A stretch of DNA of 16,633 nucleotides from Amoeboradix gromovi X-113 (Eukaryota > Fungi > Sanchytriomycota). The translations under genes and the position numbers were made by a program. Under the pieces are notes generated by a model. It was not told the origin of the DNA. It did no database searches and was given only the letters and a program-made list of their open reading frames with translations. Each line of letters begins with the position of its first letter. The stretch's first letter is position 1. Positions 141 to 16,341 of this stretch are shown here, piece by piece. The stretch covers positions 1-16,633 of the forward strand of contig JADGIF010000158.1 in assembly GCA_018985225.1 (NCBI GenBank), read 5' to 3'.

Positions 141-467
141 ATGATGATGCCACAACAATCCAACGATGCAGAAAAACAAAAGCAGCAACAACAACAAGCT
201 GAGCAGATTCAGGCAGTAATCCGAAGAGTTTTAACCAGAGAGGCATATGAGAGATTAAATAATGTTAAGTTAGTTAAACCTGAGAAAGCTCAAATGATTG
301 AGCATTATATATTTCAAATGGCTTCTAAACAGCCTATAATGCTTGGGGAAAAAGATATACTGAATCTTTTAGAACAGCCAGAGTTTAACGAAACAGCTAA
401 AGTTATAATCAAAAGAAACGTTGAATCTGATGATGAATGGGCTGCACTTGAAGGCGATGAATATTGA
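141..467 (+). CDS. PDCD5: PDCD5 / Sdd2-like dsDNA-binding protein
   Basis: Q-rich N-terminus then 'IRRVLTREAYERLNNVKLVKPEKAQMIEHYIFQMA...EKDILNLLEQ...IKR..SDDE', the typical PDCD5 pattern. First ATG at 141 (the ORF track starts at TTG 111). Confidence 0.9.
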   Translation: MMMPQQSNDAEKQKQQQQQAEQIQAVIRRVLTREAYERLNNVKLVKPEKAQMIEHYIFQMASKQPIMLGEKDILNLLEQPEFNETAKVIIKRNVESDDEWAALEGDEY

Positions 468-489
468 ATATTATATTAAAATAAATTTC

Positions 490-750
490 TATTTATAACT
501 TTTCCTCTTTAAAATTCCTGATTTACTGGAAAAATCCTCACATAGAAGTTCAAAACCCCAGTCAAATTTTTACAGTACTTGTTCGCACTTCCACTACTCT
601 GAGACGGGATTGATCATTGGATAACTTGCTCAAAGTGCATGTTCTTTGTTTGTACCTGTACTTCATTTTAGACCAGTTTCTGAGTATACTATTTTATTCA
701 GTTGAAAAAGTCCATTGTAGCGATATGGCTTATGGAATCACTATATATTC
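490..750 (-). ncRNA. Unclassified structured RNA element, copy A
   Basis: Minus-strand motifs ATAAGCCA (733-726), CAGAAACTGGTCTAAAATGAA (682-662), CAAAGAACA (648-640), TAGTGGAAG (596-588) and a 3' hairpin TTTTCC..TAAATCAGGAATTTTA..GGAAAA are colinear with copies B-D. Nested stems CTGGTC/GACTGG, TACAGGTAC/GTACTGTA, TGCACT/AGTGCG. Ends approximate. Confidence 0.6.
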
Positions 751-806
751 AGCTGAATTTACAGCTGTTTTAATTTGGATTGTTTTGAAACTAGCCGCTA
801 CATAAG

Positions 807-2221
807 ATGGAGGAAGTCAAAAATGTTATGTCCAAGCTTGTTGATAAAACCCCTATTAACGATAAGTTACTATCAAGACCACCATTTAGATATTTATACG
901 ATATGATTATAGAATTGAATCAGAAGTTCAACTGTTTCCAATTACCATCAATAGATCCAGATATAGTAACAAAAGAACAGAAATTATCGTTTTTGCAGTC
1001 TGTTATTGAACAAGTTGGACCAGGTGTTAATGCTAAAGCGTCTAAAATAGTCGCAGGTCTGGAAGTCGAGAATACCTGGGAATTATTAATTTTGATTTCC
1101 AAAAAAATCAACGAAAAGGTTTTAATAGACAAGGAGCTTGAGAAGCAACAGAAAAAGCAGGAAAAATCAAAGATACCGGAAAAAAATGTTGAGAAATCAA
1201 GAACCTCTCTAGCAGGCCCAGTACAAGATAAACCTATGAAAAAGAGTGGCTCTAAAGAAAAAAAAGAAAGGATAGAACCAAAAGAGATGAAGAGTCCCTA
1301 TACTAAGACCGCGGAAAAACCAGAACCCTCCAAAAAACCAGTTTCGAAATCAAAAGAAGAAAGTAGACGAGAAACCCAGCCTCTGGGTGAGAAAAACCTT
1401 AAAGTAGGTCTCAAGTCATCGGCTCCAAAGGAAAAGCCAGCTACTTCTATAAAGAAAACGAGTAGTAAGGAGCTAAAATCTCCTGAACAACCAGTCGCAT
1501 CATCATCTCCAAAGAAAAAAAAGTTGAGCAAGAATGAAAGCGAAGAGAACTTACAGCATCCAATCACTCGTAAGAAGTCGGAGGAATTTTCAAAAACAAA
1601 TGTCTTACAAACTGTGATTAACGCTACAAACATTGCAGTTGAAAACAAAGCACAGAGCTTTATCGACTCATCAAAGTACAAACAAACTCATTTAGTGTTT
1701 CACCTGTGTCTATTTTAAAAGACGAGAACCAAGAGCATCCTGACTTAAACTACTTAATGGAAATGACAAGCAACAGGTCTACTAAAAAAGAAGACATGCC
1801 GACTGCTATTGTACAATCGAAGTTATTAAAATCTATTGCGAGTACAGGATATAAGAATGAGACCGATAATCTAAAATTCAGTCCAAAATCACTAACAGAA
1901 TCTACTATTCAGGATTTTATTCAAAGTATCAGCAAAAACATACATCCACTAAGCGATATAATAGAATATTTGCCCGAGAATGTGGAAGCCATGTCAAGAG
2001 AGAACCTGAGCTGGGATCCTCTCATTGAAAAATATAAAATGGAGTATCTCGATGAGAAACAGGAAACAATGAAGCTTACACGCTCATCAACAAGGGAACA
2101 AAATGAGCTGAACTTAAGAATCAGAAAGGCTAGAGAAATGGTCAAGGTAGCTTATTATAACCTACATCATACGGAAGACATCGAACAAAAAATTATGAAT
2201 TCTATAGTAAATCCAGATTAG
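807..2221 (+). CDS. TRAF3IP1: IFT54 / TRAF3IP1 (MIP-T3) intraflagellar transport protein; exons 807-1675 and 1696-2221
   Basis: N-terminal CH-like domain 'KLLSRPPFRYLYD...KIVAGLEVENT', K/E-rich linker and C-terminal coiled coil 'IQSISKNIHPLSDIIEYLPENVEAM'. The two ORFs join in frame by removing a 20-nt GT-AG intron. Confidence 0.92.
1676..1695 (+). other. 20-nt spliceosomal intron (GTACAAACAAACTCATTTAG)
   Basis: GT..AG with CTCAT branch-like motif; removal restores the IFT54 frame (S-N-V-S-P-V-S-I-L-K). Confidence 0.85.
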
Positions 2222-2984: not shown

Positions 2985-3456
2985 TTCACGAATACCATTA
3001 CTCGATTATGTAAACCATTGTGTAAATCGTTGCCCATTTTTGTGTCGCACTCTGATTATTTCTCGTTAAATTCTACTTTACGAGAAAACCAAGAATTTCT
3101 GAAAAGAAACTGACAAAGCCAGACTACGTTAAGCCGGTTGCCCACGCTTCCACTAAGCTGGGCATAAAATAAACCGAGGTGCATCGTAGCGTGTGTTCTT
3201 TGCTGCCATAAGTCGTTTCATTTTAAGACCAGTTCTGCCTTCTGGGAGTAGTGGATAGTGTTACGTATCTCATTTTGATATCTAAATATGTGGCTTATTC
3301 TGGTAATGACGACTTGAGATGTTTGCATTAGATGAGAAAAAAGATATCAAGTTTTTATAAAACTAGAAACTCTGTAAAGAGAGTGCAATTTGGCATTAAG
3401 AAAAACATAGCCGCGATAAATGGTTTATTTAATTAGAGCCAAGAGCTGTTCGTAAT
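2985..3456 (-). ncRNA. Unclassified structured RNA element, copy B (core about 3059-3298)
   Basis: Minus-strand ATAAGCCA (3298-3291), CAGAACTGGTCTTAAAATGAA (3237-3217), CAAAGAACA (3202-3194), TAGTGGAAG (3155-3147), GAAATTCTTGGTTTTCTCGTAAAGTAGAATTTAACGAGAAA (3099-3059). Enclosed by a long imperfect outer stem (GCACTCT/AGAGTGC, TAAACCATT/AATGGTTTA). Confidence 0.65.
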
Positions 3457-7895: not shown

Positions 7896-8378
7896 CAACA
7901 GTTATAAATGCAGTAAAACATAGTTCCAATACGTTGCCATCTACCAAACAAGCAAAGAGAATGAACGTGATAAGAAAGTGATTAAACATAAACATAGCAG
8001 TTACTTCGACAACATGAAAGGTTATCTGGTATTGCAACCAAGAACTAGCGTAAGTACGGCAACAATGTTCATGACACATAATGTTTACCAAGTGACGACG
8101 AGGGCCCTTATTGACAGAGATATTAACAGCATGTAGTTTCACTAGTATAAACCACTTATTGCGGTTACTTGGCGTTTTACTTTCACTTAATTCTTTTTAC
8201 AGGATACTCTCAATGGCATAAAACTAGTTCATAAATAGAATCACAAGATGCCTTTCAACGCAAGGAAAGAGGTTTCTATACCATTTACAAGAAGCTCAAA
8301 AGTCGCATTGCTGCTATTCGGAAATTCATGATTTTCTTGGAAACCAGGACTTTCAACGAGGAGCGAGCTGTTGCTTAG
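7896..8378 (+). ncRNA. Unclassified structured RNA element, copy C (expanded)
   Basis: 3' block GAAATTCATGATTTTCTTGGAAACCAGGACTTTCAACGAG (8321-8360) matches copies B and D. AACATGAA (8011-8018) and CCAAGAAC (8038-8045) are motif variants. Stems ATAGCAGT/GCTGCTAT, CGAC/GTCG, TGGTAT/ATACCA, GCGT/ACGC, CAACAGTT/AGCTGTTG. Confidence 0.55.
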
Positions 8379-16065: not shown

Positions 16066-16341
16066 AGTAGCAACTCGATTTTTTTCTTGAATAAATCATT
16101 TATGGCGATTTTTTATGCATTTTGGACAGAAATAAGTGCAAAATGTCATTTGAGAGTAGACAAAGACCATTTTCAAAGATGTACATATACTTGAAACATA
16201 TTCATTCGTACTCCGCCCCACCTTAGAGCATTAGAATCGTGCGTAAATGCTGCAAGCGAGCGACTTATTTTTGTCATTCTCTCTATCGAAATTTTTGATT
16301 TTCTTGTAATTCAGCATTTTAAACGAGATTGGTTTGCTACT
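16066..16341 (+). ncRNA. Unclassified structured RNA element, copy D
   Basis: ATAAATCA (16091-98), CAGAAA-6nt-CAAAATG-15nt-CAAAGACCA (same spacing as copy A), 13-bp stem GACAGAAATAAGT/ACTTATTTTTGTC (16125-37/16263-75), GAAATTTTTGATTTTCTTGTAATTCAGCATTTTAAACGAGA (16288-16328), closing stem AGTAGCAA/TTGCTACT. Confidence 0.62.

Follow-up and report, generated by a model that had tools for sequence, protein, structure and literature searches.

Fanzor2 nucleases and the TnpB nucleases of IS607-family transposons have guide RNAs composed of stem-loops and a pseudoknot, the latter joining the last ~5 nt before the guide to the scaffold's 5' region (PMC10711439, PMC11832414). A DPG motif in RuvC-I is a signature of the Fanzor/pro-Fanzor clade (PMC10711439). 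In a live element of this kind, a serine recombinase (TnpA) would move the element, the scaffold and adjacent flank would be transcribed or processed as the guide RNA, and the nuclease-RNA complex would cut the empty site, so that the element is retained or copied back. The paper on the genome of Amoeboradix gromovi does not mention transposable elements (PMC8371127), and we found no paper linking Fanzor, TnpB or IS607 with sanchytrid fungi. Here we analysed a window of this genome (the whole stretch of DNA presented, 16,633 nucleotides) and found that two of its intergenic sequences, copies A and B, are very probably old and decayed MITE-like elements, derived by internal deletion from an IS607-type transposon that once encoded a Fanzor2/TnpB RNA-guided nuclease. 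Their surviving parts, 503-648 and 3061-3211 on the minus strand, appear to be the right end of the element, that is, the last RuvC-III codons followed by the scaffold up to the transposon boundary.

The first-pass annotation had presented A and B as related copies of a structured RNA in which the six bases following each of two shared motifs, CAAAGAACA and TAGTGGA, form a helix on the minus strand. Its coordinates for the motifs and for both arms are all correct when read on this strand. In copy A, the anchor CAAAGAACA is read directly at 648-640 and is followed at 639-634 by TGCACT, the 5' arm (UGCACU, N); its equivalent in the transposon family is the codons I-Y-I right after RuvC-III. The second motif, TAGTGGA, is read at 596-590 and precedes AGTGCG, the 3' arm (AGUGCG, M), at 589-584, within the loop of the family stem S2. 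Direct reading of the minus strand places the corresponding elements of copy B at 3202-3194 (CAAAGAACA), 3193-3188 (CACGCT), 3155-3149 (TAGTGGA) and 3148-3143 (AGCGTG). Six pairs are possible in A (U.G, G-C, C-G, A-U, C-G, U-A), and the arms of B allow six Watson-Crick pairs. The minus strand is indeed the informative one: the U.G of copy A would become A.C on the plus strand, and the orientation of the element's ORF agrees.

Copy A is flanked by two plus-strand genes, a PDCD5-like gene (141..467; Pfam PF01984, E 1.9e-17), whose stop and the near end of copy A are 36 nt apart, and an IFT54/MIP-T3-like gene (807..2220; PF10243, E 7e-16). These Pfam matches agree with the genes named earlier, and their orientation bears out that copy A, on the minus strand, is part of neither neighbouring mRNA. 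On the other hand, its status as a transcript of its own, which had been deduced from this arrangement, does not follow from being antisense to PDCD5 and IFT54. The IFT54-like gene contains a 20-nt GT…AG intron (GTACAAACAAACTCATTTAG) at 1676-1695, and its ORF ends at 2215-2223 with three consecutive in-frame stops, TAG TGA TAA.

To map relatives within the window, an HMM was built from a ~600-nt repeat of the same genome and the 16.6-kb sequence was searched with nhmmer. Four copies, A to D, were matched. The right end of copy A, composed of relic RuvC-III codons and the omega/reRNA scaffold, extends over 503..648 on the minus strand (HMM 474-625, E 1.7e-13), with a 3' terminus …TTTTAAAGAGGA at about 503. 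That of copy B, where the relic codons L-M-A-A-K-N-T precede the scaffold, covers 3061..3211 on the same strand (HMM 465-624, E 5.9e-15). These E-values exclude a chance similarity of A and B and, together with their mutual alignment over ~300 nt, confirm that the two copies are related; the similar motif spacings pointed out in the first-pass annotation are due to this homology. Copy A is 61% identical to a main-family copy, and A and B show 61-63% identity to young copies. The left end of copy B (…AATAAACCATTTATCGCGG…) is found at 3291..3435 on the minus strand by alignment and by the HMM (18-162, E 4.3e-4). On the plus strand, copy D has a left end at 16069-16123 (HMM 3-57, E 6.5e-7) and a right end at 16135-16327 (HMM 431-623, E 3.7e-17), and copy C corresponds to the last ~62 nt of the right end at 8302..8363 (HMM 561-626, E 4.3e-10). 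Since copy C is only this terminal part, the "200-nt apical expansion" ascribed to it is unlikely.

Copies B and D (the latter at 16069..16327) are thus internally deleted mini-elements that keep both ends, and MITE-like examples with both ends around an internal deletion also occur beyond the window (loci L020 and L021). Copy A keeps the right end and matches an element end at its 3' side only. Positions 649..772 of the minus strand may hold internal or left-end remains, as a weak MAFFT alignment suggests, with no significant family HMM match; the sole match to the family 5' terminus is ACAGCT at about 770-765, which does not allow the 5' boundary to be demonstrated. Both A and B lack the TnpB/Fanzor ORF, of which a few relic codons are left, with stops (…MAAKNT… in B, …QTKNM… in A). 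The right-end fragments (A, B, D, L012, L013, L020, L021) mostly start at HMM positions 431-499, i.e. at the RuvC-III codons, indicating that the whole RNA scaffold is the part that survives.

The identity of the family was established in the window's own assembly (10,549,678 bases). BLAST searches with A and B revealed relatives on other contigs. In one relative, the region aligned with the copies closes an ORF that reads …MPCTRYATLKRTSLETYNCTNCHLEIDRDHMAARNIYIKYL… (Pfam PF07282, E 4e-6), the Zn-ribbon and RuvC-III signature of TnpB/Fanzor nucleases. PF07282 (TnpB Zn-ribbon/TNB) gave at least 150 matches over the cut-off in the genome, from 560 candidates. Among the loci fetched for the best of these matches, 19 of 20 turned out to be one ~600-nt repeat with sharp ends, present in at least 150 copies in the 10.5-Mb genome, which starts with CAGCTCGATTGTTTTCTTGAATAAATCATTTATCGCG… and ends with …GGAAATCAGGACTTTTAACGAGGAG. 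The 22 full copies examined begin with CAGCTCGATT… and end with …AACGAGGAG, and their flanks are unrelated. Neither target-site duplications (TSD) nor terminal inverted repeats (TIR) were seen at these 22 copies, as is expected for IS607. An adjoining CCG was likewise not seen at the ends of the copies examined. The 134-aa ORF of the family, reading …FTSQTCTRCG…YTCTNCHLEIDRDHMAARNIYIKYL…, corresponds to the C-terminal third of TnpB/Fanzor2 (PF07282, E 3.4e-20). Dozens of the ~600-nt elements (for instance L018:1420-1824 and L017:1435-1842, among many more) have an uninterrupted frame of 134-145 aa, which codes only for the region from RuvC-II to RuvC-III and a 38-aa tail encoded by the scaffold. 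This open frame could mean either that the family is young or that a truncated protein is under selection.

In the searched assembly, we found no intact autonomous element bearing the family's own right end, only three long broken fragments; one long fragment of the family, L044, encodes DPGVRKFL, the DPG signature of RuvC-I. Similarly, no TnpA was found alongside the family's own ends, the recombinase being seen only with sister subfamilies. An apparently intact Fanzor2 of 569 aa, within an open frame of 672 aa, is located at L024:1417-3169 (G000:C542), where it overlaps a resolvase-type TnpA in the 3' part of that gene. This nuclease carries ALDPGVRKF (the DPG motif) and MDRDHLAARNIF, and the solved structure closest to it is that of the mimivirus Fanzor2 L79 (PDB 9b0l, E 5e-16). 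A resolvase-domain ORF (PF00239) adjoins TnpB in both L024 and L038, with right ends differing from that of the abundant family. The L024 Fanzor2 was rejected as master of the family, since its DNA is homologous only up to HMM position 493 and it has a different right end. At L038 (G000:C459), a complete mini-element (185-758) is followed, ~270 nt downstream, by a TnpA-TnpB pair of another subfamily (1032-2613), an arrangement that may have arisen by insertion beside the end of a related element.

The interpretation of the two anchors as RNA motifs is not supported. In intact 134-aa ORFs, the sequence aligned to CAAAGAACA is GCAGCAAGGAACATA, which reads GCA-GCA-AGG-AAC-ATA and codes for A-A-R-N-I. 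The anchor at 640..648 is thus what remains of the codons A-(K/R)-N-(I/T) in the TnpB RuvC-III motif DRDxNAAxNI, and its conservation is inherited from the protein-coding constraint in active ancestors. TAGTGGA is the 5' arm of S2 (UAGUGA/UCACUG in the family), a stem of the putative guide RNA (omega/reRNA). S2 is 90% paired across 28 copies, with its terminal A-U replaced by G-C in four of them. In copy A it is located at 573..596 of the minus strand, where UAGUG (596-592) faces UACUG (577-573), and five of the six pairs are kept.

The right end of a young copy folds at -41.5 kcal/mol into a hairpin CCC[GCCUCA]GGG, S2, two longer hairpins, H3 and H4, and a closing pairing UCCUU/GAGGA. When this stem-loop model, with the N-M helix included, was applied to 28 copies, 83.8% of the cells were paired, and 19 double-change cells were counted for the same fold model versus 9.8 in shuffles (none of 500 as high); in H3, for instance, CUAGC/GCUAG is changed to CUGGC/GUCAG. 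The 3' tail GAGG(A) can pair either with the CCUC loop (4 bp) or, as GAGGA, with UCCUU (5 bp), there being too little variation to choose between them. Either option would match the published pseudoknot between the 5' region and the 3' terminus. Copy A keeps UCUC/GAGG and copy B does not. A covariance model of the right end retrieved at least 150 copies above 137 bits, and those among the matches listed all belong to the young family; the divergent copies came from BLAST with divergent queries. RNAalifold gave no consensus structure on the family alignment, which is blurred by decayed copies and indels. Homology of position and fold suggests that the scaffold once served as a functional guide RNA. 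In A and B, H3 and H4 each retain only 6-8 of 13 pairs and the closing pairing 1-2 of 5, and copy A has a 6-nt deletion in H4. These two copies look like old, neutrally decaying relics and are probably inert now. On the plus strand of copy A, CAAAACCCCA can be read; it is not conserved in B.

The first-pass annotation had regarded the helix as fixed by two full compensatory swaps and one U.G to C-G change between A and B. With N taken as the six bases after CAAAGAACA and M as the six after TAGTGGA, M falls inside the S2 loop, and its pairing with N would create an additional pseudoknot. The family consensus (N=UAUACA, M=AGCGUG) pairs at four of the six positions, leaving A.C and A.A mismatches, and the same 4/6 pairing is found in essentially all near-consensus copies sampled (~40 read directly). 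The consensus of the older lineage, approximately UAYACU/AGCGUG, pairs at 5/6 and shares the A.C mismatch with the young family. Across 27 diverse copies, 69.4% of the N-M cells pair versus 71.4% in column shuffles (the observed value was reached by 488 of 500), and 2 double-change cells, which are A and B themselves, compare with 3.8 in shuffles. Hence the view that compensatory change fixes the helix is not sustained: other copies do not keep the pairing, which is the outcome that the first-pass annotation had itself named as a refutation. The apparent swap at position 4 is composed of two independent single transitions from an ancestral A.C mismatch (C to U in A, A to G in B), and at such a mismatch a pair results from any transition. 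In the U.G to C-G change, one side alone is altered. Position 2, where A-U became G-C in A, is the sole true double substitution.

It is highly improbable that A and B represent an independent functional family of structured ncRNAs, with their own minus-strand transcripts and a long-range 6-bp helix kept by compensatory evolution. This explanation gains from the double substitution at position 2 of copy A and from the complete 6/6 pairing, with different sequences, in A, B, L013 and L054, whose other stems are eroded; this is slightly more than simple decay predicts. Furthermore, N-M is 69% paired in register 0, versus 23-58% in most slid registers, indicating that an ancestral complementarity does exist. 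However, every conserved part of A and B aligns to the transposon right end, CAAAGAACA being relic coding sequence, and the abundant family pairs at only 4/6 with no covariation above column shuffles. Among 22 copies with less than 80% identity to the reference, pairing amounts to 61% for N-M and to 68% for the control stem S2, showing that both decay alike. The helix is absent from the MFE folds of A and B; the penalty for forcing it is +4.6 kcal/mol in the former and +4.2 in the latter, with a pair probability of ~0.001 under nested folding. Rfam 15 had nothing at the gathering score for the A/B region, and nothing relevant at E up to 10; snRNA, snoRNA, RNase P/MRP, SRP and telomerase RNA, considered by eye, were dropped once the coding frame appeared. 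N-M is at most an ancestral, peripheral pairing (5/6 in the older lineage) that present copies do not maintain. What stands of the structured-RNA reading is that the sequence derives from a structured RNA, the putative guide-RNA scaffold, on the minus strand. The copies represent right ends of miniature IS607/Fanzor2 transposons, and an unrecognised RNA family is not supported.

A role of the miniature elements within the transposon system itself could also be considered. Non-autonomous copies might have been domesticated and still make guide RNAs that serve a Fanzor2, or a nuclease-dead derivative of it, in trans, for homing or for regulation of nearby genes. Both ends are kept and the last ~150-195 nt, i.e. 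the scaffold, always so; at least one intact Fanzor2 gene is present in the genome, and many young-family copies keep the open 134-145-aa frame. We consider this very unlikely all the same, as the intact Fanzor2 is of a different subfamily whose right end is unrelated, the stems of A and B are eroded, and retention of the ends is expected anyway for cis sites of transposition. A further proposal, that the minis, including the old A and B, are still transcribed to guide-RNA-like molecules and that the 6/6 helix of A, B, L013 and L054 reflects selection after loss of the coding constraint, has hardly any probability in our judgement; if it were true, the transcribed minis of this fungus would be a reservoir of guides available in trans to a Fanzor2 or to a dead derivative of it. 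Alternatively, the relics could matter mainly as DNA, acting as promoter, 5'-UTR or terminator in short spacers, with copy A serving as the IFT54 promoter and the PDCD5 3' end. The right end of copy A is separated by 36 nt from the PDCD5 stop, the possible 5' remnant of this copy would reach to ~35 nt before the IFT54 start codon, and four relics lie in the spacers of this single 16.6-kb contig. There is no evidence of selection on the relics, however, and we regard such a role as unlikely; it is compatible with the transposon-relic explanation and does not exclude it.

With A and B read as transposon relics, an apparent new structured-RNA family "occupying every large spacer" becomes the debris of one transposon family, and a false lead is removed. 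Miniature IS607/Fanzor2 elements are present by the hundreds in this 10.5-Mb fungal genome and have kept precisely their guide-RNA end, and the family could serve as a natural data set on how a guide-RNA scaffold decays or persists without its nuclease. The relics also account for much of the intergenic sequence that looks conserved in this genome, which is of use for its annotation.

The omegaRNA of ApmFz2 from Acanthamoeba polyphaga mimivirus (PDB 9B0L; PMC11832414) provides a direct comparison, its nuclease being the nearest solved relative of the intact Fanzor2 of this genome. In both systems the scaffold overlaps the 3' end of the ORF, contains several stem-loops and ends at the transposon boundary. 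In ApmFz2, the last ~5 nt next to the guide pair with the scaffold's 5' region, and GAGG(A) with CCUC or UCCUU are the candidate counterparts here. The present scaffold is shorter (~115-135 nt versus 205 nt) and unrelated in sequence, and A and B are decayed copies devoid of a nuclease gene. A similar relationship is observed with the reRNA of IS607-family TnpB, such as that of ISXfa1 (PMC10711439). Common features are the absence of TIR and TSD, DPG in RuvC-I, and three or so stem-loops; a pseudoknot beside the guide is a candidate here, and association with a serine-recombinase TnpA is seen in this genome for sister subfamilies. The A. gromovi elements differ from ISXfa1 by their eukaryotic (fungal) host, by their hundreds of miniature copies and by a TnpA that is found only with sister subfamilies.

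The omegaRNA of ISDra2 TnpB (PDB 8H1J, 8EXA), of the same superfamily, likewise starts inside the 3' coding region of tnpB and has a pseudoknot core with dispensable peripheral 5' stems, but ISDra2 is an IS200/IS605 element with a Y1 transposase, and no RNA sequence similarity to it is detectable. In their internal deletions that keep both ends, their high copy number and their location in intergenic spacers, the copies resemble MITEs and the PATEs of IS200/IS605. Unlike these, the present family has no terminal inverted repeats or TSD, and its retained right end is the putative guide-RNA scaffold in addition to being a recombinase site. Miniature IS607/Fanzor2 transposons that carry such an end are of an already known kind, and no new RNA gene has to be assumed for A and B.
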